Shown one piece after another: positions 1 to 64,000 of a stretch of DNA of 64,000 nt. The translations under genes were made by a program, and so were the position numbers. Positions within the stretch are counted from its first letter, which is position 1. Each line of letters begins with the position of its first letter. The notes beneath the pieces were generated by a model. That model searched no databases. It saw only the letters and a list, made by a program, of their open reading frames with translations, and was not told the origin of the DNA. The stretch is taken from sequence record MH791411.1. One strand, 5' to 3'.

Positions 1-140
1 AGTACTACGTTGTCGTATACGTGTGCATTGATAGTGATTTCGATAGTGTTCATGGTGTATCTCCTGGACTTGAGGGGAAACCATTTCCCCCTCTCGATAT
101 AAAACATTATACGTTAATCTAACTACAATGCAAGTACTTT

Positions 141-332
141 TTAAATTTTATTTCCGATATAGTCCGGCATGTTCTTTTCAGTCATACGCTTTGCTAATGT
201 CTGCATATGGCTTATAGCGTTCAAGGTGTCTTCCTCCAGGGATGAATCGAGATAATCAGGATCATTCTTCACCTTGCAATGATTATGATAGCGTAGTACT
301 GCCAGTACTTTTTTAACTTCTTCTACTGTCAT
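141..332 (-). CDS. hypothetical early protein
   Basis: 63 aa ORF, 4-nt overlap with upstream gene. Confidence 0.75.
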   Translation of the reverse strand: MTVEEVKKVLAVLRYHNHCKVKNDPDYLDSSLEEDTLNAISHMQTLAKRMTEKNMPDYIGNKI

Positions 333-601
333 AATAAGTACCCCACTTCGTTAGCTTTCAGGTTAGTATCAATCATCAGTGGATTTTTGTAGTTCACAAA
401 ACGAGTAGTTTTCTCGATAGCGAATCCCATATAATCCAGCTTACTAACAGTACATTCATTCTTAAAAACTTCTTTCGCTGCATCGATGGCTGATTGCATG
501 GATAACCGACCATCTAAATTAATGTTTCCAAATGATCCACCAGCAGAAGTAGGATTACCGTTCATATCTTTAATGATCATAGTAGCGGAGTAGCTGGACA
601 T
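329..601 (-). CDS. hypothetical early protein
   Basis: 90 aa ORF behind promoter-hairpin cassette and AAGGA RBS. Confidence 0.8.
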   Translation of the reverse strand: MSSYSATMIIKDMNGNPTSAGGSFGNINLDGRLSMQSAIDAAKEVFKNECTVSKLDYMGFAIEKTTRFVNYKNPLMIDTNLKANEVGYLL

Positions 602-690
602 AATTTTGTTTCCTTTTATTGGTGTGGGGAGAACTATTCTCCCCTTGATGTAAACTATTATACAGTACTAAAATACTTTGTCAAATACTT

Positions 691-1098
691 TTATTCGCCC
701 ATATAGATTAGATTATCATCGCCTACATAGGGATCGCAAACGTTGATTTCTTCACAGTACTTCGTGAATACATCGCCATAGTGACCTAAACCACGATCCC
801 AAAAACCAGTTCCGTGACCTTCGCGGGTAAGGAACAGATCATGACCAGCTTGCTCATAACCGTAATCAATAAACATACCGCGAACTACTTCCAGATCATT
901 ACCGTGTTTCTCAATGAAGCGAGAACATGCAATCACCGCCGCTTGACGTGCTTCATCAGATAACTCATAATCTTCCAGGTAATCGCCGTTATCATTATGT
1001 ACAGTACTGAATTGCATAGCTTCAATGTAAGCTACAACCATTGCAGCATGATTTTTATCGTTAGTGATGTTCCGAGCGAGATTAGTAGTAGTAGACAT
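691..1098 (-). CDS. conserved phage hypothetical protein (GHDxxLTRxGHGxGFWDR motif)
   Basis: 135 aa, own promoter cassette; motif recalled from uncharacterised phage proteins. Confidence 0.8.
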   Translation of the reverse strand: MSTTTNLARNITNDKNHAAMVVAYIEAMQFSTVHNDNGDYLEDYELSDEARQAAVIACSRFIEKHGNDLEVVRGMFIDYGYEQAGHDLFLTREGHGTGFWDRGLGHYGDVFTKYCEEINVCDPYVGDDNLIYMGE

Positions 1099-1181
1099 GA
1101 TTTTATTCCTTATTGTATTGGGGAGAACTATTCTCCCCTTGATGTAAACTATTATACAGTACTGATATACTTTGTCAATAC

Positions 1182-1403
1182 TTAATTACGTTTAAAATGA
1201 TATGTGCCTTTATCATCCTGTACGCCCCATACTGATTTACCATCAACACCAGTGAAGCCGGATTGTAATTCAATATGGAAACCATTATTATCAACTACAA
1301 AAACTTTTTTATTTTCATCCCGATAACATTGATATTCTGAATCAACATTAAAGGCCGCATCATTCAGACGATTGGAAGCGTAAATGCAAGTCATTGTAGT
1401 CAT
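1182..1403 (-). CDS. hypothetical early protein
   Basis: start moved to MTTMTC after AAGGA RBS. Confidence 0.75.
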   Translation of the reverse strand: MTTMTCIYASNRLNDAAFNVDSEYQCYRDENKKVFVVDNNGFHIELQSGFTGVDGKSVWGVQDDKGTYHFKRN

Positions 1404-1539
1404 GATTTTATTCCTTAATATACCAGGGAGAACCATTCCCCCTCTCGATATAAAACATTATACTTGATTCTAAGTACAATGCAAGTACTTTTTTAAAAAT
1501 AGTTTTCAGTACTGAATACTTATATAATAGATACACTTC

Positions 1540-1610
1540 CGCACCCTATGGGTCAGTGAGTTATCTCTCAATGGATATATAATAGCAAAGGGACTGACCG
1601 GAGTCAATCC
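1540..1610 (-). ncRNA. promoter-driven hairpin + CCCAYMGGGTGC RNA element (family A)
   Basis: TTGACT-N17-TATTAT, GAG-AGATAA-CTC hairpin, CCCATAGGGTGC, no ORF. Confidence 0.55.
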
Positions 1611-1627
1611 CTTTTTTTAATCTTTTT

Positions 1628-2212
1628 TTATCGTGTTACCTTACTTGCTGCCACATCACGCTTTTTATAGTACTGATTCCAGATATTGCTGGTTAAACCG
1701 TAATCAAGTACTTTAATAAGTCCATTACGATCCTGGCCGATATTCTGTTTTCTGATATCTCTTATCGTTAGTGTTGATAATGTATCATCAACGTGTTGTA
1801 GTGCATCAGCAAAGCGGTGCTGGCGTTCGATTGCATTACGTTTAATATTGTACTTTAATTCATTGCACGCGTTTACGTGCTTCACACTGCCTTTGCTTGC
1901 AGTACTCAACCGATCCATAACGATAAACATATTATCAGGATCGCATAAATGCATATGCACCTTTGCAAAGTACTGTTTCAATTGAGGGCGGTCATAGTCT
2001 AAAAAATTCCATACCTTACATTCAGTTTCATTTTGTTCTACACCCGCATCACAATTCGCGACCTTAATCACTAACCGATCATTTAAAGCGAAAACTATAC
2101 GGGAAGAACCAGCACCGATGATCTCCAGGCCAGCTAACCGACAAGCTGAAAGGATCTCTTTGTTGGTTTCCATTTCTGACAGTGTACGGATGAATTTAGT
2201 ATAATTACGCAT
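1628..2212 (-). CDS. putative protein kinase-like (ePK/APH fold) protein
   Basis: GAGSSR Gly loop, VIK lysine, NETE helix-C Glu, DIRKQN catalytic loop, LDYG motif. Confidence 0.75.
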   Translation of the reverse strand: MRNYTKFIRTLSEMETNKEILSACRLAGLEIIGAGSSRIVFALNDRLVIKVANCDAGVEQNETECKVWNFLDYDRPQLKQYFAKVHMHLCDPDNMFIVMDRLSTASKGSVKHVNACNELKYNIKRNAIERQHRFADALQHVDDTLSTLTIRDIRKQNIGQDRNGLIKVLDYGLTSNIWNQYYKKRDVAASKVTR

Positions 2213-2243
2213 TGCATGTTCTCCTTGAGTTAATGAAACTATA

Positions 2244-2486
2244 TTACAGTACTTTACTATCAATGGCAACTACTTTTTTAACATTAACGGCGTGGATCAC
2301 TTCCTTCGTGTTTTTAGTACTGAATACTTTCGCCGCTCCTTGTTCGACCGTGATACGATAGCGACCATTAACATCAACCATATTAATAAAGTCCGGCGTG
2401 CTGAATGGTGTTGTTTTACATTTGAGTACTGTTAACAGTTCCACCAGCGATGTAGTTTCTTTGATACGTTTTTCTAAAGTAATCAT
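2244..2486 (-). CDS. hypothetical early protein
   Basis: start at MITLEK; own TTGACA/TACTAT promoter. Confidence 0.75.
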   Translation of the reverse strand: MITLEKRIKETTSLVELLTVLKCKTTPFSTPDFINMVDVNGRYRITVEQGAAKVFSTKNTKEVIHAVNVKKVVAIDSKVL

Positions 2487-2543
2487 TTTGTTTCCCCCGT
2501 GTTGGTATGTACATATAGTACTAAAACATTTGAGTACTGTCAA

Positions 2544-2762
2544 TTAGATAATATTATATTTCTTAAAATAAAATGCGTCCTGTGTTGGTTGATACTCGAT
2601 ACCGTTACCGTTATTGACTTCAACTAATAAACCTTTGTCAATTAGTTTTTTAATAGTACGATACCCTTGTTGAAAATTGGTAAAATGTGAATCATTACGA
2701 AAGGTATAACCGTGCTTAACTGCTTCATCAATAGTTTTCTTTTCGATTTTAGATAATTTCAT
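2544..2762 (-). CDS. hypothetical early protein (possible winged helix)
   Basis: start at MKLSK; promoter nearly identical to the one at 2483-2545. Confidence 0.7.
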   Translation of the reverse strand: MKLSKIEKKTIDEAVKHGYTFRNDSHFTNFQQGYRTIKKLIDKGLLVEVNNGNGIEYQPTQDAFYFKKYNII

Positions 2763-2815
2763 TTTGTTTCTCCCGTGTTGGTATGTGTACATAGTACTAA
2801 AACAATTGAGTACTG

Positions 2816-3070
2816 TCAACGTGATATTAGTTTTATTTTCTTATTGTATTGTTGATGCTCATAAAGGTTTATCTTTCCTGTGTTCTCGATTACTATCCTG
2901 TTGTTAGTGTCCACGTCGATTACACGCAGTTTCCCGTTGCTTAACTTCCTAGGTAATAGGTTACCATTAATAAACTCATTAGCAAGCTGTACGGCCTTTG
3001 TGATGATTCTCTGAGGTGCTTTATAGTGTACCCGTAAGATGTTATCTTTATATAGTTGAACCTTAATCAT
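2816..3070 (-). CDS. hypothetical protein (possible ParE-toxin-like fold)
   Basis: 84 aa; LRVIDVDTNNRIVI resembles the 'R.....YRIv' pattern; weak. Confidence 0.65.
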   Translation of the reverse strand: MIKVQLYKDNILRVHYKAPQRIITKAVQLANEFINGNLLPRKLSNGKLRVIDVDTNNRIVIENTGKINLYEHQQYNKKIKLISR

Positions 3071-3131
3071 TTTGTTTGTCCTATAAAAAAGGCGGGAACT
3101 GATCCCGCCGTGTTGTTAGTACTGCAAGTTA

Positions 3132-3527
3132 TTAGATAACCTGGCGGCGTTTACTGTATACTGTTACACGATTACCCTTACGATCATGTCGGATCTCTTT
3201 CTGGTTGCGAATCAGTTCACTTGGACGCTTAAGGTTTGCCAGGTGATCCGCGTGAGTCCATGCGGTGTGGTTTACCTGTACTTTGATATCAGAATCAGCG
3301 ATAAACTCATCTTGTGCGTCAAGTATTGCCGCCAGCATATCCGCTCGTTTTAGTTCTGCTGCTGTCAGTACTGGCTCAGGTGAATTCACAATATCAGAGA
3401 TTTCTTTGAACTGTACGGCCCAGCGTTGACCTTTCGTTGCATCTTTGCCCATGTCTTTAAATGCTGCTCCTTCCTCGCGTGCAACAATACGGGCAGCTTC
3501 ACGGGTAGCGTAGAATTTAGTAATCAT
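3132..3527 (-). CDS. hypothetical early protein, paralog of 16542-16808
   Basis: shared KxxATRExAR, FKDMG, RWA and DRKGNRVTVY motifs. Confidence 0.85.
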   Translation of the reverse strand: MITKFYATREAARIVAREEGAAFKDMGKDATKGQRWAVQFKEISDIVNSPEPVLTAAELKRADMLAAILDAQDEFIADSDIKVQVNHTAWTHADHLANLKRPSELIRNQKEIRHDRKGNRVTVYSKRRQVI

Positions 3528-3622
3528 GGTATACATCCTATTAGTTGAGTTAGTACTACAAGTTAGAGTCTATTATAAAGTACTATCTGGGCAATGTCAA
3601 ATAGTACTTTAAATGGATTCTA

Positions 3623-3946
3623 TTACATGTCTTTCTTACGTTTTACATCGTGGTAGCGAACTGTTATTTCTTTGTTGATCTCTTCCTCGATGCGATGAAT
3701 AACTTTTTCTTTCGGGTTGAAACCTATAACGGTTTCTTTAATGATCTCCAAGCCCGTGTATTCGCCTTGTGTACCGTAACCGTATGTAAAGGTTTCGTGT
3801 CCCAGGTCTTCCCAGCGGTCGCCAATTAACGCAGACACGTAGCAAGAGTGGTAAGTATTGCCGTGTGAATCAGTCCACCGATTAACGTTAATGTCAAAGG
3901 AGGTTACAATTTTCAATTCTACTTTCTGGGCAAGGATCATAGCCAT
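3623..3946 (-). CDS. hypothetical early protein, paralog of 10466-10789
   Basis: shared RWTDSxGNTYHSC, FTYGY and VKRKKD motifs. Confidence 0.85.
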   Translation of the reverse strand: MAMILAQKVELKIVTSFDINVNRWTDSHGNTYHSCYVSALIGDRWEDLGHETFTYGYGTQGEYTGLEIIKETVIGFNPKEKVIHRIEEEINKEITVRYHDVKRKKDM

Positions 3947-4033
3947 TTTTATTTCTCTCTCTTTGTTAGGAGGGGAACCATTCCCCTCGCTTGATGTAAA
4001 CTATTATACAGTACTAAGATACTTTGTCAATAC

Positions 4034-4216
4034 TTATTTTTTGGAAAGTTTACGCATTAATTCTACGCTTTCTTGTGAACGTTTTGCTACCTGGCAAGCT
4101 GTATGGGCAGTAAACATTTTTGTATAGTCTGACGCTTTGCCACCGAACCGAGCGGCACGTTCACGGGCACTTGGAACTAATACTATTTCTTTATTACAGA
4201 TAGTGCACTTAGCCAT
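4034..4216 (-). CDS. small putative zinc-binding protein
   Basis: CxxC...HxxC; start at MAKC. Confidence 0.75.
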   Translation of the reverse strand: MAKCTICNKEIVLVPSARERAARFGGKASDYTKMFTAHTACQVAKRSQESVELMRKLSKK

Positions 4217-4304
4217 TTTTATTTCTCTCTCTTTGTTAGGAGGGGAACCGTTTCCCCTCACTTGATGTAAACTATTATACAGTACTAAGATACTTTGTCA
4301 ATAC

Positions 4305-4580
4305 TTAAGTATTGTAAATGTCGTGAATAGTGATAAAGTTTTTACGACCGTAAACATGTAAATCAGTATCAATGTAGTGCTTATCAAGTACATCCTCGAC
4401 GCTTAAAGACGTGTCGTGAATATCTTCATAAAATTGTGGATCAACAATCGTGCTTAAGTCATCTGGCGTTAACTTATCGTTAAGGCATTGAACCGCCTGG
4501 ATATCTGCTTCACGTTTCCATTGTTCCAGATTAGTAGTCAGTACTTGCTCGATTTCGTTAGCTGTAAGTAAAGTCCGCAT
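4305..4580 (-). CDS. acidic hypothetical early protein
   Basis: 91 aa, own promoter, AAGGA RBS. Confidence 0.8.
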   Translation of the reverse strand: MRTLLTANEIEQVLTTNLEQWKREADIQAVQCLNDKLTPDDLSTIVDPQFYEDIHDTSLSVEDVLDKHYIDTDLHVYGRKNFITIHDIYNT

Positions 4581-4649
4581 TTTAATGTTTCCTTATCAGT
4601 GGTTGATGTAAGTATTATACTCGTTTACTTTCTATTGTCAAACTATTTT

Positions 4650-4724
4650 ATCAGGGGAGTTTTTCGTATGTCTTACTCCTGGACTACTTAACGGGGTTAC
4701 TTATTTCGTTCCCCGTCCTGATGT
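4650..4724 (-). ncRNA. structured small RNA candidate (family B, copy 1)
   Basis: directly after TTGCAT/TATAAT promoter, no ATG, closing stem ATCAGG/CCTGAT, near-identical copy at 15865-15941. Confidence 0.6.
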
Positions 4725-4815
4725 AAAACATTATACTTGATTCTAAGTACAATGCAAGTACTTTTTTAAAAATAGTTTTCAGTACTAGCCACCAGCAAAC
4801 AATAGATACATTTAT

Positions 4816-4880
4816 GCACCCTGTGGGCTAATTTGTTTCTATGCGTATATAATAGCAAAGGGACTGACCGGAGTCAATCC
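4816..4880 (-). ncRNA. family A RNA element
   Basis: TTGACT/TATTAT promoter then CCCACAGGGTGC. Confidence 0.5.
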
Positions 4881-4895
4881 CTTTTTCAAATATTT

Positions 4896-5045
4896 TTAAA
4901 CTTCTTTCGGGTTGCGATATGTGATAGCGTTCGGGTACATTTGTTTAATGTTATTCCATGCCTGGTTAACATTATAACCACTTGATCGAATCAGTTGGTT
5001 ATTACCGACACCTTGAAACACTACTTCAAATAAGAATTCTTTCAT
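4896..5045 (-). CDS. small hypothetical protein (49 aa, not in ORF track)
   Basis: MKEFLFEVVFQGVG...; ATGA overlap with upstream stop. Confidence 0.7.
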   Translation of the reverse strand: MKEFLFEVVFQGVGNNQLIRSSGYNVNQAWNNIKQMYPNAITYRNPKEV

Positions 5046-5215
5046 GCTTTCACCTCTCGATCTGCTTTGCCTTTACGCCAGGCCGTTGCTAATTGTTCGC
5101 GTTGCCATAAGTCGAGTGATACGTAAAGTTTTGCATTATCACCCTTCGGATATTCGCCAGTAGTACCAATCCGATAAAACAGATCTTTCAGTACTGTTAA
5201 TTCTACCTGGACCAT
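5042..5215 (-). CDS. hypothetical early protein
   Basis: start at MVQVEL after cassette RBS. Confidence 0.7.
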   Translation of the reverse strand: MVQVELTVLKDLFYRIGTTGEYPKGDNAKLYVSLDLWQREQLATAWRKGKADREVKA

Positions 5216-5302
5216 TATACTTTCCTCTTTGTTAGGAGGGGAACTATTCCCCTTCCGATATAAAACATTATACACTTTATTCAGTACTGTGCAAGTACTT
5301 TT

Positions 5303-5515
5303 TTAATCTTTCAGCCAATGATCCTGAATGAATTTTTCACCGGAACCTTGCTGCATTGATTGTAACAGACGTTCGCGATGAGCGGCGGCGAATTGCTCAG
5401 TACTATGCGTTACACCTGGTTGATATCTGGATTCACCATTTGGGGCGATGTATTGTACATCCCACGGTTTTTCGTTAGTATCAGACCATTTACGAACGAT
5501 TAGTTGACCTTGCAT
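5303..5515 (-). CDS. hypothetical early protein
   Basis: 70 aa, own cassette. Confidence 0.8.
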   Translation of the reverse strand: MQGQLIVRKWSDTNEKPWDVQYIAPNGESRYQPGVTHSTEQFAAAHRERLLQSMQQGSGEKFIQDHWLKD

Positions 5516-5598
5516 TTTTCTTTCCTCTTAGTGGGGAGAATCATTTCTCCCCTTCATGTAAACTATTATACAGTACTGGATTGCATTGTCAATAGTTT

Positions 5599-5922
5599 TT
5601 ATTCACCTTGTTTGAATATAGTTTTCTCCATTGATTCCATGATTGCAACCAATACAGCATGGATCTCACTTAACGCGGCATCACTAAAAGCATTAATGAA
5701 TAGGCAATCATTCTCGCGAATATTTTTAATGTACTTATCAGCAGTGGTTGCGAATTCATTCAACGGCAGATCAAATGCTTTATCCCATAATGGATGGCGT
5801 AACTGTAACAGTACTGGATTATCACGATCACCAGGGGAAAACGTACCAGTGATGAAACATACGCCCGGAATACTTTCGAACTGGCAACGGACTTCCTTTG
5901 TGATAGTAGTATGAATGTACAT
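5599..5922 (-). CDS. hypothetical early protein
   Basis: 107 aa, GAGGA RBS. Confidence 0.75.
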   Translation of the reverse strand: MYIHTTITKEVRCQFESIPGVCFITGTFSPGDRDNPVLLQLRHPLWDKAFDLPLNEFATTADKYIKNIRENDCLFINAFSDAALSEIHAVLVAIMESMEKTIFKQGE

Positions 5923-5949
5923 TTATTGTTATCCTCTATTAAATTAATA

Positions 5950-6138
5950 TTACAGTTTATGAATTAATTCTTTATCTAAGCGATAGCGTACATTATTAAT
6001 GGTAACAGCATTATTTTTAATGCTACGCTGTACGGGTCCACCAGCAATAACAAACGTTGCTTTATTGCCCCGAACAATGATAGCACTTCCAGGATTACCG
6101 AAATCATCTTGTACTAAAATACTTGATAAGTTTTCCAT
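5950..6138 (-). CDS. hypothetical early protein
   Basis: 62 aa, own cassette. Confidence 0.75.
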   Translation of the reverse strand: MENLSSILVQDDFGNPGSAIIVRGNKATFVIAGGPVQRSIKNNAVTINNVRYRLDKELIHKL

Positions 6139-6216
6139 TTTTATTTCCTCTTAGTAGGGGAAGATGTTTCCCCTTGATGCAAGTACTATAACAGTACTGA
6201 AAACTAAATGCAAGTA

Positions 6217-6573
6217 CTATGATAAAATCATGATAGGATATTCACTATCTATCAATACCTCGAATCCGAAACCTTCGTACCATTCTTTAAGATTAAAGGC
6301 GTTATCTTCTCCCGTATCGCATTCTAAGATGATACAATCTGAATCATCGGCGGCATCAATAAAGGCATTCATTAATTCGTTACCTTCACCATTGCCCCGA
6401 CTATCAGGATCAACATAAAGAGAATCAATAAACGCTACACGGTCATAATCAAGATCCGGTGCAATGATTCCACGTTTAACAAACCAGTACTGCAATTGTG
6501 CTACTTTGCCCTGTACTTGATAGCCAGTGATCTCGCCATTGTCAGTAGTACGCGTGATATGTTGTATTCCCAT
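6217..6573 (-). CDS. GNAT-family acetyltransferase
   Basis: IDSLYVDPDSRGNGEG acetyl-CoA motif A; LKEWYEGFGF motif B. Confidence 0.85.
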   Translation of the reverse strand: MGIQHITRTTDNGEITGYQVQGKVAQLQYWFVKRGIIAPDLDYDRVAFIDSLYVDPDSRGNGEGNELMNAFIDAADDSDCIILECDTGEDNAFNLKEWYEGFGFEVLIDSEYPIMILS

Positions 6574-6636
6574 GATTACTATCCTCAGTTAAGATATAAA
6601 ACATTATACACTATCTTTCAGTACTGTCAATACTTT

Positions 6637-6894
6637 TTATCTCATAGATCTATGCCAACAATTACGCGGATCTCTTTTAAAAGTACTATCATGATCCTCC
6701 TGGCAAGTAATACAATACATGCACCCTATAACGGCCTGGCGTCGATTCTCAGGGATTTTATCGCCGCAGTCGAGGCAATGTACAAGTGATTCTCTTTGTG
6801 CGTTAATTTGCTTTCTAGCGTGGTTAACGGCGGCCTGAATCACTGCATGAATCTCGTCTTGTTCGGCCCCGTCTTTCGCGTATCCTACTGCCAT
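6637..6894 (-). CDS. TraR/DksA (YbiI-like) C4 zinc-finger protein
   Basis: CLDCGDKIPENRR...CMYCITCQ plus N-terminal acidic DGAEQDE helix. Confidence 0.85.
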   Translation of the reverse strand: MAVGYAKDGAEQDEIHAVIQAAVNHARKQINAQRESLVHCLDCGDKIPENRRQAVIGCMYCITCQEDHDSTFKRDPRNCWHRSMR

Positions 6895-7149
6895 TATTTT
6901 AACCTCATTATAAAAATACTATAGTACTGTAATGCTACAATAATACTACTAGTGTTTATCTTATTCAAACCATATGATACTACATATCCACCAGCATTAC
7001 CACGAATAGTAACGCCTTTGTACTGTCTATATAAATTCAACTGCGTATATTGCCTTTGATCAAGAATTGATCAGAATTATACGCCTTATGCTAAATTGAT
7101 CCAGTACTTTTTTGATCATTTATTGATCGATATTATATAGTTACATTTG

Positions 7150-7222
7150 TGCACCCTATGGGTTAGTGACGTTCTCGTCTTGATGTAAGTATTATGCCAG
7201 TACTGGAGGATATTGTCAATAG
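7150..7222 (-). ncRNA. family A RNA element
   Basis: TTGACA-N17-CATAAT, GAC-GAGAAC-GTC hairpin, CCCATAGGGTGC. Confidence 0.55.
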
Positions 7223-7223
7223 A

Positions 7224-7427
7224 TTATTTTAATTTTTTTCTGTCATTGATTAATGCTTTCAGTACTATACTAATAACTTGCAATGATTCATCAATGACAA
7301 TGAAATTATTCTCTTTCATTAGATGATAGTTACCATTGATTGTATATTCTAACGAGTACTGTTTACGTTTAATTTTTGATAATGTTTCTATTTGTTTTTG
7401 TACTGATTTCATGCTAATCATTGTCAA
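7224..7427 (-). CDS. hypothetical protein
   Basis: 67 aa ORF; start uncertain. Confidence 0.55.
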   Translation of the reverse strand: MTMISMKSVQKQIETLSKIKRKQYSLEYTINGNYHLMKENNFIVIDESLQVISIVLKALINDRKKLK

Positions 7428-7526
7428 ACGTCCTGTAACGCATTCTAACGAGATAAACGGTTTAGTACTGGCATTGTATAGGGTAAATGATTAAAGCCCA
7501 CCAGCGTTAACCAGTGGGCTATAATA

Positions 7527-7670
7527 TTACATCTTGCGGATAATCTTAACAGTATCTTTCACCGATTTACCGTTTTGCTGACATTGCTCGATCATCGCGT
7601 ATTGTTCTGCGGTCAGATCCTCGCCAGTTTTTGCCAGTACTGCGTCGATGAATGAATCCAGTGCGATCAT
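7527..7670 (-). CDS. small hypothetical protein (47 aa)
   Basis: MIALDSFIDAV...; own promoter; hand-translated. Confidence 0.7.
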   Translation of the reverse strand: MIALDSFIDAVLAKTGEDLTAEQYAMIEQCQQNGKSVKDTVKIIRKM

Positions 7671-7760
7671 TTTATTTCTCTCTTAGGTTAAGTTAACTAC
7701 TGTTTATAAAACTTATTATACAGTACTATCAATCTATGTCAATAGTACTGGTAATATATT

Positions 7761-7940
7761 TTAGCGGTAGTCGTCGTATGCTTTATTCACCTGGCGAATA
7801 TAACTTTCAAAGGCTTCGTCTACCGTTTCATACTCCCGAACATAATCACCATATGAAACTACATACATACCTTTTTGATCTTCAAACGTCATGATGATAG
7901 AATCCAGACCAACGATTTCAGTTTTTGCGATGATAGCCAT
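7761..7940 (-). CDS. small hypothetical protein (59 aa), similar to 10879-11091
   Basis: MAIIAKTE...DEAF; same promoter variant. Confidence 0.75.
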   Translation of the reverse strand: MAIIAKTEIVGLDSIIMTFEDQKGMYVVSYGDYVREYETVDEAFESYIRQVNKAYDDYR

Positions 7941-8023
7941 TTTTTAATTCCTTAGTAGTGTAGTTGATAAAAGTTATTATGTCAGTACTATCAAACTATG
8001 TCAATAGTACTGTGATAATATTT

Positions 8024-8236
8024 TTAGTTAATGATAGTCAGTGTAAAATTGTAATCACCGCAGCGATATAGCACGTTATTCCCAAATGTCCCAACTAATC
8101 GCACATCACACAAAACGCCGGTTTTTTCTTTTACTTCCTTGATACTTGTAACTCCTGTAATATCTTTATTAAAGTATTCATGATCTGAAAATAAAACTTG
8201 TTTTGCATTTTTTAATTTCGACCGGATATTAGCCAT
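8024..8236 (-). CDS. hypothetical early protein
   Basis: 70 aa, own cassette. Confidence 0.8.
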   Translation of the reverse strand: MANIRSKLKNAKQVLFSDHEYFNKDITGVTSIKEVKEKTGVLCDVRLVGTFGNNVLYRCGDYNFTLTIIN

Positions 8237-8332
8237 TTTGTTTTCTCTCTCTGTTAGTGGGGAGAAGTTTTTCTCCCCTTGATGTAAACTATTATACAGT
8301 ACTATAATCTATTGTCAAACTATTTTTTTATA

Positions 8333-8674
8333 TTATTCGAAATCTTCTGGACCGGACTGATAATCATCTTCACCGTATGCACTTTCTAACCGCTCGCCAG
8401 TGTGATCATCAGTTAGTGAGTCATCCTCATAGTTCACGTCTACGCCAGTGATGTAAAACTGGCTATCGTCTGGATCATTGAAATTAATTTTCTGTATGTT
8501 TACAATAACTGTATTGATGCCCAGGACACCGCCATCAGCCGTTACAAAGTACTGATAGTTTTCGCAACCGCCTGAATTGAAACCGTAATTAATTTCGGCC
8601 CGACCATCATTTAAACGCAGTGCCTGGGCGATGATTTCGTTTTCAAAGTTAGATTGAGCAATTGAGATAGTCAT
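8333..8674 (-). CDS. acidic hypothetical early protein
   Basis: start at MTISIA; acidic C-terminus. Confidence 0.8.
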   Translation of the reverse strand: MTISIAQSNFENEIIAQALRLNDGRAEINYGFNSGGCENYQYFVTADGGVLGINTVIVNIQKINFNDPDDSQFYITGVDVNYEDDSLTDDHTGERLESAYGEDDYQSGPEDFE

Positions 8675-8820
8675 GATTTGTTTCCTTATTACCAGGGGAA
8701 ACCGTTTCCCCCTCTCGATGTAAAACATTATACGCTTATTGAGATAGTTTGCAAGTACTTTCTACAAATACTTTTAAAATAGTTTTCAGTACTCAATACT
8801 CATATAATAGATACACTTAT

Positions 8821-8890
8821 GCACCCTGTGGGCTAGTGAGCTATCTCTCAATGAATATATAATAGCAAAATGGCTGACCGGAGTCAACCA
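8821..8890 (-). ncRNA. family A RNA element
   Basis: TTGACT/TATTAT promoter, GAG-AGATAG-CTC hairpin, CCCACAGGGTGC. Confidence 0.55.
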
Positions 8891-8896
8891 CTTTTT

Positions 8897-9040
8897 TCAT
8901 TTATTTTTAGCTTTTAGAATCGCCGCCTTTCGCGTCATGCCTTGCTTGATGTATTCTTGTACTTTCGCTTTACGTGCATTCGCTTTATTTGCTTTCGTAA
9001 ATGCCGAACAACTTTTATAGTTTAAACCTGTTGGATTCAT
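8897..9040 (-). CDS. small basic protein (47 aa)
   Basis: hand-translated MNPTGLNYK...; K/A-rich. Confidence 0.6.
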   Translation of the reverse strand: MNPTGLNYKSCSAFTKANKANARKAKVQEYIKQGMTRKAAILKAKNK

Positions 9041-9126
9041 TTAAATCACCATAAAGAATAGATAGGTTACTAACAACGCCGCGATCAATGCACCGACCAG
9101 GGCCGAACTATAGTAAGCTAATGTTT

Positions 9127-9279
9127 TCATTTTTTAGCCTGAAAGTAATGTTTAATTTGAGCGGCGGTCAGTGCACAATTACGCAGGAAGTTTTCTGTAT
9201 AACTGCGGCGAGTACTGAAAGAGAATTGACCTTTGCCGTTACCGATAGTAACATCAAACCGAGCGTTGTATTGTTTCAT
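9127..9279 (-). CDS. small hypothetical protein
   Basis: start at MKQYNA after AGGAG RBS. Confidence 0.7.
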   Translation of the reverse strand: MKQYNARFDVTIGNGKGQFSFSTRRSYTENFLRNCALTAAQIKHYFQAKK

Positions 9280-9360
9280 TTTGATTCTCCTGTTATTGGG
9301 GAGAATCATTTCTCCCCTTCATGTAAAACATTATACAGTACTAAAAACTAATTGCAAGTA

Positions 9361-9507
9361 CTATTTTTTAGATTTACGCAAACTTTCTACCATCTCAGGA
9401 GTAAGGCCCGGCGGGTAGGAAACTACTTCATCAACGAAACGTAAAGGGAATACCCCAGCGAAAGGTGAACGTGCTTTCTTAGTATTACTCTTTTTTGATG
9501 CTTTCAT
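9361..9507 (-). CDS. small basic protein (48 aa)
   Basis: hand-translated MKASKKSN...; own cassette. Confidence 0.65.
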   Translation of the reverse strand: MKASKKSNTKKARSPFAGVFPLRFVDEVVSYPPGLTPEMVESLRKSKK

Positions 9508-9576
9508 TTCATATTCCTTAATTAGTGGGGAGAATCATTTCTCCCCTTCATGTAAAACATTATACGCGTTTAAAAA

Positions 9577-9786
9577 CTAATTGCAAGTACTATTTGAAAG
9601 TAAATGCTCATACGCTGCATTAACTACGTTTTCAATAACCGACTGTACAGAAAGATCCCCCACGTCCTGGCTATAGTAGAAATCGCTTACAGTGGTGTCA
9701 TCGTATGCAAATACTTTACCAGGTACTGCATCAATCACATACATATTAACCTTTAAGATGTCGATCTTATCCTGTACAGTAAGCAT
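9577..9786 (-). CDS. hypothetical protein
   Basis: 69 aa in gene run. Confidence 0.7.
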   Translation of the reverse strand: MLTVQDKIDILKVNMYVIDAVPGKVFAYDDTTVSDFYYSQDVGDLSVQSVIENVVNAAYEHLLSNSTCN

Positions 9787-9791
9787 ATTAA

Positions 9792-10064
9792 TTAACCTTT
9801 TAAGTACTGGCTTAAGTAGTCTTGTTGATCTTCGGTGATTGCAGCCATCTTCCCTAGTACTGGATTAATGATATAATCCCCTGTAACGTCCTGTAACGCA
9901 TTCTCAGGCGGTTTAACGGCTGGGGTAGCCATAGCCATCGCCTGGACTTGTTCGACGCTATAACGCTCATATAGGCGGCATTCTTCCGGTGTTAACATAG
10001 CATCAATGCGTTTCATTGGTTTAATGATGCTTTCAACTTCATTCAGTACTTGATTAACGTTCAT
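9792..10064 (-). CDS. hypothetical protein
   Basis: 90 aa, GGGGA RBS. Confidence 0.75.
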   Translation of the reverse strand: MNVNQVLNEVESIIKPMKRIDAMLTPEECRLYERYSVEQVQAMAMATPAVKPPENALQDVTGDYIINPVLGKMAAITEDQQDYLSQYLKG

Positions 10065-10115
10065 GGTATAATCCCCAATATAAGCGGCCTGAATCGACCG
10101 CTAACGATGTTTTGA

Positions 10116-10385
10116 TTAATAGGTGTATGGTTGACGTTCAAACAATGATTGCACGTTGTACGCCCCACTAATGGGCTTTGCTGGTAAATCAATTTTATAT
10201 TGCTCACGCTTAAAGATAATAAAACGGCAATTGTTTTTAACATCAAAATTGATTGAACGTTCCAGTAGTTTACCATCGTGCACAAATACAAGATAACCGC
10301 TCGCTACTTGTTTTGTAGTACTGGTTGCAACCATAGACCGCCGAACATGTGTACCTGCGTCGATTAAAGTACTGATATTTTTCAT
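10116..10385 (-). CDS. hypothetical protein
   Basis: 89 aa, GAGGA RBS. Confidence 0.7.
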   Translation of the reverse strand: MKNISTLIDAGTHVRRSMVATSTTKQVASGYLVFVHDGKLLERSINFDVKNNCRFIIFKREQYKIDLPAKPISGAYNVQSLFERQPYTY

Positions 10386-10465
10386 TATACGTTCCTCTTA
10401 AGTTAATTTAATTTCTTTCCCCTATGCAGACACTATATCAAAGTATCTGCATAAAGTAAAGCTAA

Positions 10466-10789
10466 TTAAAGATCTTTTTTGCGTTTAACATTCTGTACAG
10501 TACAATGCAACGGGATATTAAGATCATTGCACAAACGAGTAAGGGAGGTTTCATCAGTATTAAGCCCGTCTACTGATTCCTTTAATAGATCTAACGCCGT
10601 TTGTTGATATGCATCTTCATAGCCATAAGTAAATGATTCAACCGCCAGATCATTCAAACCGTTATCCAGTTCGACGCTTACATGACAAGAATGATAAGTA
10701 TTGCCATATGAATCAGTCCAACGTTTACCGTCAACATTGATTGCACGGATTGCAGCCAGGGAAACGGTGTTAATGATAGTTTTAGCCAT
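10466..10789 (-). CDS. hypothetical early protein, paralog of 3623-3946
   Basis: RWTDSYGNTYHSC motif. Confidence 0.85.
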   Translation of the reverse strand: MAKTIINTVSLAAIRAINVDGKRWTDSYGNTYHSCHVSVELDNGLNDLAVESFTYGYEDAYQQTALDLLKESVDGLNTDETSLTRLCNDLNIPLHCTVQNVKRKKDL

Positions 10790-10878
10790 TTTTGTATTCC
10801 TTAAATTAATATGTTGTCTTGATAAAATCTATTATGCCAGTACTATCAAACTATGTCAATAGTACTGTGATAATATTT

Positions 10879-11091
10879 TTACTTACTTTCTTTCGCTGCT
10901 TTGTGCGTTGCCACTGCCATAACCACATCAGCACGAACAAAGTTTTTAACCGTGTCGCTGTAATAATTGATCGCTTCATCAATATCTGCGAACATCCGAT
11001 ACATACCGCACCACGATACTTTATAACCTGCTTTCACTTCTTCCAGCTTAACCAGTGATTTGTTAACTTTGATTTTAGTAATGATAGCCAT
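10879..11091 (-). CDS. hypothetical early protein
   Basis: 70 aa, own promoter. Confidence 0.8.
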   Translation of the reverse strand: MAIITKIKVNKSLVKLEEVKAGYKVSWCGMYRMFADIDEAINYYSDTVKNFVRADVVMAVATHKAAKESK

Positions 11092-11170
11092 TTTATTTTC
11101 CTCAGTTGTCTTGATAAAATCTATTATGCCAGTACTATCAAACTATGTCAATAGCACTGTGATAATATTT

Positions 11171-11314
11171 TTACTTACTTTTTGCTTTCTTGATTGCTTC
11201 CACCTGGTCGGCCCATTCTTTACCCCATACTTGTAAATTATAATGGTACTGGCAAAGAGCAACGCCCCGCTTTAAACCCGTAATAGATTTCTGACCACAT
11301 TGACAAGTTTTCAT
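11171..11314 (-). CDS. small putative zinc-binding protein (47 aa)
   Basis: hand-translated; CxC...CxxH. Confidence 0.7.
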   Translation of the reverse strand: MKTCQCGQKSITGLKRGVALCQYHYNLQVWGKEWADQVEAIKKAKSK

Positions 11315-11400
11315 TTTAGTTTCCTTGTAGTGGGGAGAACCATTTTCTCCCCTTGATGTAATGTATTATACTTTATTCGATTTACTTTGCAAGTACTTTT

Positions 11401-11628
11401 TTAATTTAATTCATCAAGGCAAAGGATACGCTCAACGCCCAAATCAGTTAAACTAATCGACGGCACTTGATAGGTTTCAATGTATGCTACACTTGCCCAC
11501 TGACCGAACTCATTAACGGCCCAGGTATTCATTGCATTTTGCAATTCCGCACCTTCCTTGTTGGTAATGACTGCAACTACTTGTTCGTTGCCAGTAGTAC
11601 CAGATACGCGAGTAATGATAATAGCCAT
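11401..11628 (-). CDS. hypothetical early protein
   Basis: start at MAIIIT. Confidence 0.75.
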   Translation of the reverse strand: MAIIITRVSGTTGNEQVVAVITNKEGAELQNAMNTWAVNEFGQWASVAYIETYQVPSISLTDLGVERILCLDELN

Positions 11629-11913
11629 TGTTTTGATTCCTTTGATTTGGAAGGAGAACCGTTTCCCCCTCTCGATGTAAAACATTATACGCTAATCTCT
11701 TAATCGTGCAAGTACTTTTTATTACTTTTTGCAAAATACTTTAAACGCTCTCAATCGCGTTCTTACAGCCTTAACGCCACCAGCTAGGGCAATGCATCAG
11801 ATAATCAGTTTAATGCGTTAGAATCGTTTCTAGGCGGTGCTGGTGGCATGGTAAACGATAAACACAAAAAAGCCCACCGTTTAAGGTGGGCTAGTGATTC
11901 AGTACTTTAATTG

Positions 11914-12396
11914 TTATGCTTCAACTTTGCGATGAGATTCGATCCATTCCTCGCGAGTCATACCGCTGGCGTTAATCGCGTCCAGTACTACCGCAATGCA
12001 GTTACCACGCACCGGAATCAGATATTCTTCCCCGTTGTCCAGTACTACCGCTACGCGTTCCTGAATCCATTTTTTGGCTTTTACTTCTGGCTTGTCTTCC
12101 CCATACTTAACCGCCAGGGCTTTTTGTGCCATCTCTGTAACTACTTCCAGATCCAATCCAACTACTGCCGCCTGAATACTTTCGATTGTTGCTTGTAGTT
12201 CTGCTTCACGGGCCGCCTTTGCCGCTTCAATTTCTGCCGCTTTATTTGCTTGTAGTTCTTTCGCAGTACTGTACGCGATGTTAAAATTATTGCGTACCGC
12301 TTTCATGGTATCGTTATCCAGTTCAGCCAGGATCTCAGCCGCGACGTTAGTTTCATTTGCTACCAGTGCTTTGATGAATGATTTTACATTAGCCAT
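11914..12396 (-). CDS. H-NS/MvaT-like protein (tentative)
   Basis: coiled-coil N-half; C-terminal LDNGE...AVVLDAINASGMTREEW resembles the H-NS DNA-binding domain. Confidence 0.55.
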   Translation of the reverse strand: MANVKSFIKALVANETNVAAEILAELDNDTMKAVRNNFNIAYSTAKELQANKAAEIEAAKAAREAELQATIESIQAAVVGLDLEVVTEMAQKALAVKYGEDKPEVKAKKWIQERVAVVLDNGEEYLIPVRGNCIAVVLDAINASGMTREEWIESHRKVEA

Positions 12397-12629
12397 TTTA
12401 TAAATCCTCAATTAAAGTTTAGTTTACGTTTATTAGTGTATCAAAGTTTTCTCGACGTGTCCAGTTTTTCGTTCGACTTACTGGCGGTCTACTTAGTGCT
12501 CCCCGTCTTGATGTAATACATTCTACGCTTTTCTGCGGTAATGTCAACTACTTTCTTAAAACTATTTTCAAAGTATCTCAGTACTACGATACTACAAAAA
12601 CAAAAAAGCCCACCAGGTGGGCTATGTAC

Positions 12630-12860: not shown

Positions 12861-12881
12861 GATGTTACCCCGTAGTATCTA

Positions 12882-13181: not shown

Positions 13182-13265
13182 TTGATTATCCTTAGTTACC
13201 AGGGGAAACCGTTTCCCCTTGCGATGTAAAATATTATACAGTACTAAAAACTAATTGCAAGTACT

Positions 13266-13502: not shown

Positions 13503-13611
13503 TTTCTTATTCCTTAGTTACCAGGGGAACCGCTCCCCCTATGCAAAACATTATACGCGTTTAAAAACTAATTGCAAGTATTTTAATAAAAAGTATTTGA
13601 AAAATAGTTGT

Positions 13612-19836: not shown

Positions 19837-19847
19837 AGTATACCTTA

Positions 19848-62224: not shown

Positions 62225-62589
62225 TTAACATCACCCCAACGGAAACCTTTCATATAATTCAAATTCACCTCAACGAGTTCATGTGTTTTTGTACACCAAA
62301 TGGAGAGAGTTTTTGTAACATCACCAGGTTCAGATTCATAATTCACACAATAACCTTCAATGCGTAGAGTTTTGTTAGTCCATGACTCCCACTCAATCCA
62401 AATTTCATTTGGATAATAAACCATATCTTCGTTGAACGTATGGAATTGGTCCATTGGTAAGTGACCTTCAACTTCAATTACTTCAGCACTTCGTGCCAGT
62501 TTTTCAAGCTTGTACTTTATTTCAGCAAGAAATTCTTCATTATTCATACGAGTTAATAAATCTGTTGCACGGGTTGTATCAAGGCTCAT
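62221..62589 (-). CDS. hypothetical protein
   Basis: 122 aa. Confidence 0.75.
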   Translation of the reverse strand: MSLDTTRATDLLTRMNNEEFLAEIKYKLEKLARSAEVIEVEGHLPMDQFHTFNEDMVYYPNEIWIEWESWTNKTLRIEGYCVNYESEPGDVTKTLSIWCTKTHELVEVNLNYMKGFRWGDVK

Positions 62590-62837
62590 TGTTGTACTCC
62601 ATTAATCACTGAAGTATTGATTCGTGTTTTACCGCTGCTGTATCCAGTACTGGTATTTGCATTAGGGCAATAAACTGTATACAAGGTTACACCAGCACCG
62701 TCCTTTTGCATACGATAAATCTTACATCCTGCTTCTTGTAATTCAATAGGGAGAATAAAATCACTTGTGCGTTCTTTTGTTGAAGCGTCACATGCAGTGA
62801 GTAAAAATGCAACGAGTACTGCTACGATATATTTCAT
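62586..62837 (-). CDS. lipoprotein
   Basis: lipobox LLTAC. Confidence 0.8.
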   Translation of the reverse strand: MKYIVAVLVAFLLTACDASTKERTSDFILPIELQEAGCKIYRMQKDGAGVTLYTVYCPNANTSTGYSSGKTRINTSVINGVQQ

Positions 62838-63145
62838 TAACGAACCTCCACTTCTTGAGAAAGAGCATGAGTCAGTGCATTTGAATTCGAACTATTCATT
62901 TCACGCTGACATACAAACATAATGGCATCTTGTACTGAACCTGCGATTTCATACTCACGACCTTCTGGATCAGTTACCAGATGTTCAACGATACAACCAC
63001 CACGCAGTACAGAAGCACCAGTACTTACACTAATCCTGTAACCTAAAAAATCAAACTGCATACATGCGTCAGTAGGTTTCATCCAATAACCGCTGTTTTG
63101 GTTCAAATCGATGATTACAAAACCTTGAGTGTTAGTTTGAAACAT
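62837..63145 (-). CDS. hypothetical protein
   Basis: 102 aa, GAGGA RBS. Confidence 0.75.
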   Translation of the reverse strand: MFQTNTQGFVIIDLNQNSGYWMKPTDACMQFDFLGYRISVSTGASVLRGGCIVEHLVTDPEGREYEIAGSVQDAIMFVCQREMNSSNSNALTHALSQEVEVR

Positions 63146-63363
63146 AGTTAATTCCTCATTTAATTTAAAAGGGTGGAAACGCAGTGACGAGTACGATTAT
63201 GCTGTCTTTCCTTTCACTGCATTCCCTTTTATATAAAACATAATACAGTACTGATATCTTATGTCAAGTATTAATCACCAAAAATCATCAGATACCCAAA
63301 CCAACCCACACAGACGACTAAGCTAACAATACCAAAGACAATCTCTAAAGTCATGTTGCATCC

Positions 63364-63564
63364 TTAATCAATGATTTTATATTCACGATGACCATAGAAT
63401 CCAGCCTCAAGGATGCGATTACCATCAGCATCTTCCAAATCCCACCCACGGGATGTTTCGGCAATAATAGTCATGATGTGACCTCTTGGGAAAATTCCAC
63501 TCAAGGTGGATACATCCTCAAGTAATTGAACCTTCTTACCAACATTTGTATTTGATTTAAACAT
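63364..63564 (-). CDS. hypothetical protein
   Basis: 66 aa. Confidence 0.75.
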   Translation of the reverse strand: MFKSNTNVGKKVQLLEDVSTLSGIFPRGHIMTIIAETSRGWDLEDADGNRILEAGFYGHREYKIID

Positions 63565-63573
63565 ACTTTACCC

Positions 63574-63756
63574 TTATTCGTTGATTACGTCAAGTACTTT
63601 GTCCAGTTTCTTACCAATACTATCCTTTGGTTTCTCACCATTCTGGAATACATTAGTACTGCAATACTCAGGACGGGTATTAGGGAACTTCTCGTTCATC
63701 CAGGAGTGACCATATACACCAAGAATGATACCTACGATAAGAATGATGATTTGCAT
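63574..63756 (-). CDS. small membrane-anchored protein
   Basis: N-terminal TM. Confidence 0.7.
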   Translation of the reverse strand: MQIIILIVGIILGVYGHSWMNEKFPNTRPEYCSTNVFQNGEKPKDSIGKKLDKVLDVINE

Positions 63757-63770
63757 GATATATCCTCTAA

Positions 63771-63980
63771 TTAAATTACATATGGTTTATAGTAATGAAT
63801 CTCGTTTGATATTACAGCGAAGACTTTGTTATTAAATCTTTCACCATAATCACGAAGAGATTCACCTTCTTCGCTTTCAATAAAGTAATTATATACTGGT
63901 AGACGTGCGGTGTCAACACCTACAAATGATTTCATGTAAATTTGTACTAAACGATTCATTCCTTCATTTAAGCATTGCAC
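63771..63980 (-). CDS. hypothetical protein
   Basis: 69 aa; start uncertain. Confidence 0.65.
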   Translation of the reverse strand: MQCLNEGMNRLVQIYMKSFVGVDTARLPVYNYFIESEEGESLRDYGERFNNKVFAVISNEIHYYKPYVI

Positions 63981-64000
63981 CTCAAAGTGCTTGATACCTT

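Follow-up and report, generated by a model that had tools for sequence, protein, structure and literature searches.

The RaK2-like jumbo phages of Enterobacterales possess a viral highly iterated palindrome, the hexamer AGTACT, which is present in about 1,000 copies per genome of about 350 kb, that is, one per 150-500 bp. It was analysed starting from a stretch of 64,000 nucleotides of sequence record MH791411.1 (the window, by which this whole stretch is meant), in which an earlier note had regarded the over-represented palindrome as a genome-wide binding or modification mark for a dimeric phage protein. The window harbors 280 copies of AGTACT, compared with 22.1±5.1 in dinucleotide-preserving shuffles (maximum 37); it is the commonest of all hexamers there, and all other 6-bp palindromes remain at or below about twice the number expected for them. 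In a megablast comparison, window positions 15000-23000 matched Ecwhy_1, fEgEco12 and 121Q (99, 98.8 and 88.6% identity, respectively), and on sequence grounds the source is assigned to Asteriusvirus, i.e., to the 121Q/RaK2-like jumbo coliphages (myoviruses) with a genome of about 350 kb. Placed from the same match, the window corresponds to approximately 290.4-354.4 kb of Ecwhy_1. The genome of the latter (354.5 kb) contains about 985 copies against about 120 expected, and the genome-wide occurrence asserted in the earlier note is thus borne out.

Abundance, anatomy and conservation of AGTACT

The excess of AGTACT is selected on duplex DNA; neither codons nor reading frame, strand, RNA or repeated cassettes account for it. 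The other 50-kb blocks of Ecwhy_1 contain 99-148 copies each (expected about 17) and the 250-290 kb interval contains 123 (expected 13.5), with the replication and structural-gene regions being 6-8-fold enriched. According to our own crude gene calling (136 open reading frames, 80% coding), 164 of the 280 window sites are located inside predicted genes, distributed over the three frames as 75/34/55, and 116 are intergenic or at gene edges. The corresponding densities are 3.2/kb in coding and 9.1/kb in intergenic DNA, compared with about 0.34/kb expected; positions 1-25200 reach 4.5 and 10/kb, respectively, and coding DNA elsewhere has 2.5-2.7/kb. Three codon-aware null models yielded far fewer coding sites than the 164 observed, namely 47±6 when synonymous codons were shuffled with proteins and per-gene codon usage kept, 24±5 when codons were permuted and 36±6 when they were redrawn from global usage (z = 18-30). 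The excess therefore persists under the correction for codon and dipeptide usage that had been named earlier as a check. A second such check concerned repeated cassettes. When sites with 40-nt flanks at least 60% identical were merged, 68 intergenic contexts (about 4 expected) and 162 coding contexts were left as independent, the biggest cluster of similar flanks having 14 members; repeated cassettes are therefore not the cause.

The motif has also left its imprint on protein sequence. In the window, 51% of Ser-Thr dipeptides are encoded as AGTACT (15% expected) and 56% of Val-Leu dipeptides as GTACTN (21% expected), and the Ser-Thr dipeptide itself, with 147 occurrences against 89 expected, is 66% above composition, from which it follows that the motif moulds the proteins and not the reverse. 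Selection thus raises the frequency even of those dipeptides that are able to encode the motif. AGT accounts for 32% of Ser codons and ACT for 46% of Thr codons in the window, and since the excess is seen in all three frames, this codon preference is a likelier consequence than cause. Among the tRNAs of Ecwhy_1 (L002, 13570-17333) are tRNA-Ser(GCU), the reader of AGU, and two tRNA-Thr(UGU); codon usage and the phage tRNA set may thus both have been influenced by the motif.

The selected motif is the contiguous 8-bp palindrome HAGTACTD, with CAGTACTG as its best form and TTCAGTACTGAA as its extended form. In a total of 155 kb from this genome, CAGTACTG was counted 113 times compared with 1.67 expected (67-fold), AAGTACTT and TAGTACTA occur 39 and 20 times against 5.4 expected (7.2- and 3.7-fold, respectively), and GAGTACTC, with 2 copies against 1.67, is not enriched. 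The centre of CAG-NN-CTG is TA in 113 of 126 cases in the same 155 kb, and the one-mismatch variants of the hexamer are just 0.4-2.4-fold enriched. Thus, the information is packed into 8 fully specified contiguous base pairs and fades outward. With the sites oriented by transcription, their flanks are reverse-complement symmetric and alike in coding and intergenic DNA (C at -1 in 48-50%, G at +6 in 46-50%, T at -3 in about 45% and A at +8 in about 47%), a symmetry that speaks for a two-fold-symmetric reader of duplex DNA rather than an RNA motif. A contiguous and fully specified palindrome is the typical pattern of restriction/modification enzymes; helix-turn-helix dimers usually tolerate a loose centre of their site. 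Perfect copies of TTCAGTACTGAA number eight in the window (Table 1), including all five reported before, whose positions were right within 2 nt, and the count of 12 AGTACT copies given for 18600-19430 proved exact. Allowing at most one mismatch, TTCAGTACTGAA occurs 26 times against 0.27 expected, and 20 of these copies are within 1-21.5 kb.

The enrichment is common to all sampled RaK2-like phages of Enterobacterales (hosts in Escherichia, Klebsiella, Cronobacter, Yersinia, Salmonella and Erwinia). In particular, 218 copies were counted in 121Q (expected 16), 80 in the Klebsiella phage RaK2 (expected 9.8), 101 in the Cronobacter phage GAP32 (expected 10.4), 74 in the Yersinia phage fHe-Yen9-04 (expected 11.8) and 72 in 35 kb of the Salmonella phage Munch, and the Erwinia phage pEa_SNUABM_47 has 58 copies of HAGTACTD in 30 kb. 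It is absent in the samples from three relatives with other hosts, namely Pseudomonas phage PA5oct (0 in 40 kb and 4 in 50 kb; expected 13 and 16.5, respectively), Xanthomonas phage XacN1 (0; expected 6) and Acinetobacter phage ME3 (22; expected 16.9), as well as in T4 (4; expected 7.3) and a 50-kb sample of Escherichia coli K-12 (3; expected 5.3). The base at -1 is G in 5-10% of sites throughout the enriched genomes, and C in 46-48% in Asteriusvirus and RaK2 and in 33% in Yen9-04. Phages are textbook palindrome avoiders, and here a whole lineage with 350-kb genomes does the opposite, bending both codon choice and dipeptide content. Depletion of the site, as under restriction avoidance, was found in PA5oct and XacN1 only. 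Over 80-170 kb of PA5oct (L009, L010), many 6-bp palindromes are depleted, several of them to 0-0.25 of expectation; this is classic restriction avoidance, sharply unlike its enterobacterial relatives. No published mention of AGTACT enrichment was found for any phage, and it goes unmentioned in the genome papers of RaK2, CBB and fEgEco12 as well as in a survey covering 224 jumbo phages.

Sequence comparison shows that the sites are retained across species and genera beyond comparable sequence, indicating purifying selection. Against 121Q (88% identity), 135 of 169 aligned sites (80%) are intact compared with 57% of all hexamers, the per-base divergence being about 0.07 within the motif and about 0.12 in its flanks. 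In 30 orthologous open reading frames compared with RaK2 (67% amino-acid identity), 18 sites are held in common (of 62 and 64, respectively) against 0.13 expected under independent positions; where the residues are identical, 17 of 24 sites were kept (71%), compared with 35% of control hexamers (p = 3.5e-4). Most of the non-shared sites fall where the amino acids differ, so that turnover takes place too. Ser-Thr is written AGTACT at the same rate, 56%, in both Ecwhy_1 and RaK2.

Placement in promoters, terminators and coding DNA

Among 37 strict intergenic sigma70-like promoters, 21 carry AGTACT, 20 of them with a distance of 7-8 nt between the site and the downstream -10 hexamer. The fixed position upstream of -10 boxes described in the earlier note therefore holds for one promoter family (20 of 37; CAGTACTG-TATAAT), and other families use other registers, in which the motif overlaps the -35 region (AGTACTTGCA), abuts it (AGTACTATTGACA) or itself forms the -10 box (TACTAT). 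Promoters of the -35-overlap family often have TTCAGTACTGAA about 23 nt further upstream. A sigma70 promoter element would be restricted to promoters and fixed in register; the registers of AGTACT vary and 59% of its sites are intragenic. With 164 of 280 sites inside genes having like flanks, several registers in use and structural regions enriched 6-8-fold, the idea of promoter tagging is too narrow. In the intergenic DNA of positions 1-25200, the early genes are bordered by a few families of near-identical promoter/5'UTR (5' untranslated region) cassettes, e.g., TTGACA...AGTACTGTATAAT followed by a conserved leader and a Shine-Dalgarno sequence. T4-type phages carry mobile promoter-stem-loop cassettes, of which these early cassettes are reminiscent.

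The presence of the motif in terminator stems of the propeller-gene array was confirmed in both arms. The predicted hairpin, GCCAGUAC-UUGA-GUACUGGC followed by a U-run, has a folding energy of -12 to -17 kcal/mol (z of -4.4 to -6.5). Such stems are limited to about 10 propeller-array terminators and account for about 17 of the 280 sites. The common denominator of placement is freedom and not register: spacers, stems and synonymous positions are all places where a site comes at low cost.

Functional readings of the motif

By analogy, the closest parallel of AGTACT is HIP1, GCGATCGC, an 8-bp palindrome of cyanobacteria that is 15-300-fold over-represented in and between genes, is conserved beyond neutral expectation and is tied to methyltransferases of its inner hexamer, its function being debated (PMC5861425, PMC4390886). 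Like HIP1 and the alternate cyanobacterial HIPs, AGTACT is a short contiguous palindrome, enriched in the order of tens-fold, with about one site per gene or more; it occurs in and between genes and in all frames, is conserved beyond neutral expectation, and its 8-mer varies mainly at the outer bases. Four of the HIP properties tested were found, fully or in part. Set beside the level of at least 10-fold genome-wide over-representation that marks such palindromes, AGTACT is 8-13-fold and CAGTACTG 67-fold enriched, with the roughly 985 sites per genome given above; its independence of frame and codon follows from the 75/34/55 distribution, the 164 sites against 47±6 and the intergenic density of about 9/kb, and its conservation from the comparisons with 121Q (80 vs 57%) and RaK2 (71 vs 35%). 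The two differ in that AGTACT is AT-rich whereas HIP1 is GC-rich, in that the former belongs to a virulent phage lineage and the latter to a cellular phylum, in that no cognate methyltransferase was found for AGTACT, and in that the host genome, as sampled in 50 kb of E. coli, does not share the enrichment. HIP1 has a 10-90-kb periodicity; for AGTACT the spacing data consist of inter-site gap statistics.

Chi (GCTGGTGG) and the uptake sequences of Neisseria and Haemophilus are likewise frequent short self motifs, selected and scattered in coding DNA, of which many are needed since each site acts locally. Uptake sequences also sit as inverted pairs in terminators. They differ from the palindromic AGTACT in being asymmetric and orientation-dependent, with RecBCD and ComP as their readers, and Chi is enriched in the window separately from AGTACT. 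The target of a type II restriction-modification system of the ScaI type is the identical hexamer, equally strict, contiguous and all-or-none, with the sign reversed: AGTACT is 8-13-fold enriched here, and PA5oct depletes it (4 sites in 90 kb).

The reading that we favour, and to which we assign about an even chance, is that AGTACT is a selected self tag, dense and genome-wide, read by a two-fold-symmetric protein of the phage lineage. This sequence-specific reader would be encoded by the phage lineage itself and would be as strict as a restriction/modification enzyme, demanding 8 contiguous base pairs and a full centre and barring G at -1. That T4 is unenriched on the same host and that the flanks drift between genera are the reasons for placing the reader in the phage lineage; a host factor exploited by no other lineage could also play this part. 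Each site would add to a tag marking phage DNA off from host DNA, and the tag would hold some DNA transaction on or off phage DNA, the candidates being protection from a nuclease, loading of repair, replication or packaging factors, or a covalent mark. We propose that sites pile up in unconstrained sequence because more of them would be better anywhere; synonymous or near-synonymous codon pairs, promoter spacers and terminator stems would be such places, and at some 20 early promoters a site at -20 to -14 could double as an operator. The density contrast, 2.8/kb in the phage compared with 0.06/kb in a single 50-kb sample of E. coli (approximately 45-fold), makes self/non-self marking plausible as far as sequence can tell. 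More tentatively, and with more doubt than confidence, the palindrome may be a virus 'self code', by which a DNA-processing activity of the phage tells phage from host DNA through a phage reader resembling a restriction enzyme. Such phages would have neither base replacement nor a nucleus-like shell, and the discriminating activity would be host-DNA degradation, repair, replication restart or packaging. DNA of fEgEco12 is cut as predicted by ten restriction enzymes (PMC13070987), and so has no global base replacement.

Several points weigh against the self-tag reading. The evidence reaches selection for the sites and not their benefit, and a repair-driven origin, as in Elhai's HIP1 model, would likewise maintain them. 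The host density comes from the one 50-kb sample, and host effects cannot be separated from those of phage clade, because a single clade may comprise all phages with the enrichment. No methyltransferase is shared by the whole enriched set, and no suitable DNA-binding domain was found in 55 window proteins compared with Pfam at E ≤ 0.01, nor at E ≤ 5, where three of them were rescanned and two further proteins were scanned only at that threshold. The spacing of sites is merely mildly regular in Asteriusvirus (coefficient of variation, CV, 0.75-0.83 compared with 0.99±0.09; largest gaps 1.6-1.7 kb compared with 2.2-2.4 kb expected) and random in RaK2 and Yen9-04, and the use of the site by Ser-Thr dipeptides in relation to a neighbouring site shows a non-significant trend (0.47 vs 0.60, p ~0.09); neither a 'coverage' nor a 'dose' logic is thus established. 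Overall, the interpretation in the earlier note is partly supported. It is right in kind, since the sites form a genome-wide, duplex-level, symmetric and selected mark that fits a symmetric protein, but it is too promoter-centred and is unproven in detail, the search having yielded no protein that binds or modifies the motif.

A scan of 30 early proteins against Pfam returned a ParE-like domain, a GNAT domain, a DksA/TraR zinc finger and a weak kinase-like match, none of which fits a palindrome reader. Operators of the Phd/YefM type have a GTAC core. A DNA binder of the antitoxin type, encoded beside the ParE-like gene, was considered and rejected; the neighbouring genes contain no antitoxin domain and have no Pfam match even at E = 5.

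Among the other explanations, it is unlikely, though worth taking seriously, that AGTACT is a methylation or modification motif accompanied by repair drive, as in Elhai's model of HIP1. A phage methyltransferase would mark AGTACT, and the excess would be made or kept either through mismatch correction that depends on the modification or because a dense epigenetic mark is selected for. A hexamer of this kind, strict, contiguous and palindromic, is what type II methyltransferases typically recognize, and the 8-mer deviates chiefly at its end bases, like HIP1 around its methylated inner hexamer (PMC4390886). The enzymes themselves are divided among the phages. Ecwhy_1 encodes one C5 and one Dam-like methyltransferase; the C5 enzyme is confined to part of the Asteriusvirus records and RaK2, the Dam-like enzyme is a member of a very widespread phage family and is not specific to the group, and an N4-cytosine enzyme is confined to Mimasvirus (GAP32, CBB) and Eneladusvirus, its homologues from a large protein search bearing generic names. 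None of the three tracks the motif, and a single methyltransferase shared by all enriched phages is not supported. The C5 and N4-cytosine enzymes are complementary in distribution. It may be worth noting that some cytosine methyltransferase occurs in every sub-lineage and that each strand of the motif contains a single cytosine. Against the modification motif stand also the only methylation reported for RaK2, which concerns CpG and comes from bisulfite data that the paper does not show (PMC3622015), and the deamination variant AGTATT/AATACT, which is not depleted (0.99-1.38-fold). A drive of the very-short-patch type was rejected, since no one-mismatch variant is depleted enough. The position-by-position conservation is of the kind that Xu et al. 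read as selection over drive (PMC5861425). If the modification motif were nevertheless correct, these phages would offer a tractable model for the thirty-year-old HIP1 problem, with a lytic phage that grows on E. coli K-12, 1,000 sites and, in GAGTACTC, a clean unenriched control.

It is rather improbable that AGTACT is the operator of a global regulator of early transcription, with intragenic copies being incidental or a sink. The promoter register described above and the concentration in early DNA (10/kb in early intergenic sequence; 20 of 26 near-perfect 12-mers in 1-21.5 kb) speak for an operator. However, the 164 coding sites have like flanks and are conserved across genera, the replication and structural regions remain 6-8-fold enriched with few such promoters, the register varies by promoter family and terminator stems carry the site; moreover, the fixed register may just reflect descent from one duplicated cassette.

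Very unlikely is a signal for DNA packaging or termini, similar to an uptake sequence, with the terminase or a partner preferring motif-rich DNA. Three copies of CAGTACTG lie within 100 bp outside the left terminus, the terminal 1.6 kb holds 20 sites, and inverted pairs are found in terminators as in neisserial uptake sequences; yet the other repeat boundary is without a cluster, and one initiation per concatemer requires no thousand sites. Only a slim chance is left to a 'coverage' site for replication or repair, such as a primase start, strand-discrimination or nicking site needed on both strands within a set distance. The palindrome serves both strands and the Asteriusvirus spacing is more even than random, but spacing is random in RaK2 and Yen9-04, usage does not depend on neighbours, the early intergenic density of 10/kb is far beyond need, and known primases read trinucleotides.

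A hijack of the host nucleoid-occlusion factor SlmA to block cell division is highly improbable and largely refuted by sequence. SlmA occurs in Enterobacterales, the order infected by all enriched phages. Its site, GTGAGTACTCAC, is a 12-bp palindrome with the same six central bases as the phage motif (PMC3020112). The protein needs G1, T2, a purine at 3, A4 and G5 and tolerates changes at 6 (PMC3020112), whereas the phage sites disfavour or lack these flanks and are strict where SlmA is loose. No full SlmA site was found in 155 kb, only 5 of 558 half-sites in the window fit SlmA, and no SlmA homologue was found in these phages. SlmA was rejected as the reader on account of C at position 3 in 48% of sites, the count of GAGTACTC (2 vs 1.67) and the strict TA centre. 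The earlier suggestion of a decoy for a host enzyme consequently finds no support, T4 being unenriched on the same host and SlmA being mismatched at the flanks. Finally, an artefact of composition, codon or dipeptide usage or cassettes, or else an RNA-level motif, has a next to negligible probability: related promoter cassettes do give part of the intergenic excess (the cluster of 14) and AGT and ACT are favoured codons, but shuffles, codon-aware nulls and the cassette collapse exclude composition, codon usage and cassettes, and symmetric flanks and promoter-spacer sites argue against an RNA motif.

If AGTACT is a self tag, it would point to an undescribed discrimination of self from host DNA in an unmodified, un-compartmentalised jumbo phage, and the 'self code', if true, would make it the first palindrome of this class whose selective logic can be identified, and the first from a virus. 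TTGAGTACTCAA is the unenriched counterpart of TTCAGTACTGAA. In metagenomes, the motif can serve as a simple signature by which these phages are recognized. Extreme sensitivity to restriction of the ScaI type (about 1,000 cuts) is predicted as well unless the sites are protected, which bears on host range and use in therapy.

Genome terminus and other features of the window

According to the Ecwhy_1 annotation, the window consists of three zones: about 24 kb of tiny minus-strand genes separated by gaps of about 80 bp, an array of RCC1-like propeller genes, and further minus-strand genes (Table 1). The label 'DNA condensation protein' of the propeller paralogues is a name transfer only; a near-identical terminator follows each of them, and their copy number differs between the window and 121Q.

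Table 1. Coordinates of features in the 64,000-nucleotide window
Feature	Position	Strand	Remark
AGTACT in 18600-19430	18610, 18650, 18706, 18773, 18799, 18942, 18982, 19128, 19224, 19349, 19370, 19420		
Perfect TTCAGTACTGAA	1505 (1505..1516), 13701, 15994, 16293, 17782, 18254, 19346, 26045		
Promoter, family A	4003..4045	-	TTGACA, 16-nt spacer ending AGTACTG, TATAAT
Family A layout, also (among others)	662, 1156, 4279, 5570, 8296, 18940, 48417, 59284, 63245		
Promoter, two-site family	7715..7760	-	AGTACT abutting -35 (AGTACTATTGACA) and a second 7-8 nt before -10
Two-site family, also	7981, 10836, 3577		
Promoter, -35-overlap family	15140..15185	-	A-tract, AGTACTTGCA, about 17 nt, TATAAT
-35-overlap family, also	133, 1484, 4757, 8754, 11392, 11711, 15974, 16534, 17213, 17673		
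Intrinsic terminator after RCC1-like propeller gene	26676..26703	+	Motif in both arms, GCCAGTAC / GTACTGGC
Similar terminators	25500, 27930, 30317, 31568, 32786, 34050, 36513, 37720, 39606		
RCC1-like propeller array	25500-39640	+	About 12 paralogues
Direct terminal repeat, part (about 21 kb in full)	1..19327	-	Homology to fEgEco12
Non-coding stretch around terminus 19327	17800..19630	-	20 AGTACT (17673-19420)
Chi copies	537, 2441, 4789, 6038, 6988, 7498, 11777, 11839, 18731, 18743, 25776, 38267, 48912, 59445		
ParE-like toxin-domain protein, 84 aa	2816-3070	-	PF24732, E = 6e-11
Early protein, GNAT acetyltransferase domain	6217-6573	-	
Early protein, DksA/TraR C4 zinc finger	6637-6894	-	
Early protein, protein-kinase-like match	1628-2212	-	Weak, sub-threshold

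On the minus strand, window position 19327 aligns with base 1 of fEgEco12, the match extending over 1500 nt at 98.8% identity. The direct terminal repeat of that phage is 20,993 bp long, as determined with PhageTerm, its termini being confirmed with restriction digests (PMC13070987). Because of this alignment and these mapped termini, window positions 1-19327 are placed in the direct terminal repeat. They contain small early genes, each with its own sigma70-like promoter and terminator cassette, and form the zone richest in AGTACT. The physical end of the genome thereby falls inside 18600-19430, the non-coding stretch picked out in the earlier note. Nine of the AGTACT sites of the terminus region fit the 12-mer TTCAGTACTGAA with at most one mismatch, and the three CAGTACTG copies outside the terminus are at 19349, 19370 and 19420. 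At the opposite repeat boundary the closest site is 130 bp off, and a symmetric link of AGTACT to both ends of the repeat was rejected, the cluster being present at one boundary only. An RNA gene in the site-rich non-coding stretch (17800..19630) was rejected as well, no Rfam or tRNA match being found there.

The same stretch harbors a tandem array with an 8-bp period and units like CRTCYAGC (about 18 units, 18425-18576), which has no Rfam match and might serve in packaging, replication or protein binding. Clusters of a TGATTAC-type 10-bp repeat flank the terminus at 19240-19273 and 19470-19503; they are distinct from AGTACT and may be elements for the terminase or for end recognition. The Chi octamer is present in 14 copies in the window (3 on the plus and 11 on the minus strand) against about 0.4 expected by composition, and 10 of them are in the terminal repeat; 121Q is similar with 13 in 48 kb, compared with 1-3 per 40-50 kb in RaK2 and in other genome parts. 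By its strand bias, Chi would face a RecBCD enzyme that enters at the right genome end. An inverted Chi pair, CCACCAGC-ttgt-GCTGGTGG (18731-18750), is a palindrome able to form a hairpin; it is located about 590 bp from the genome's left physical end and would show Chi to RecBCD from both directions. The early proteins with GNAT, DksA/TraR and kinase-like matches are candidates for host-takeover functions. GATC is scarce in the window (129 copies against 211 expected by composition) despite the encoded Dam-like methyltransferase.

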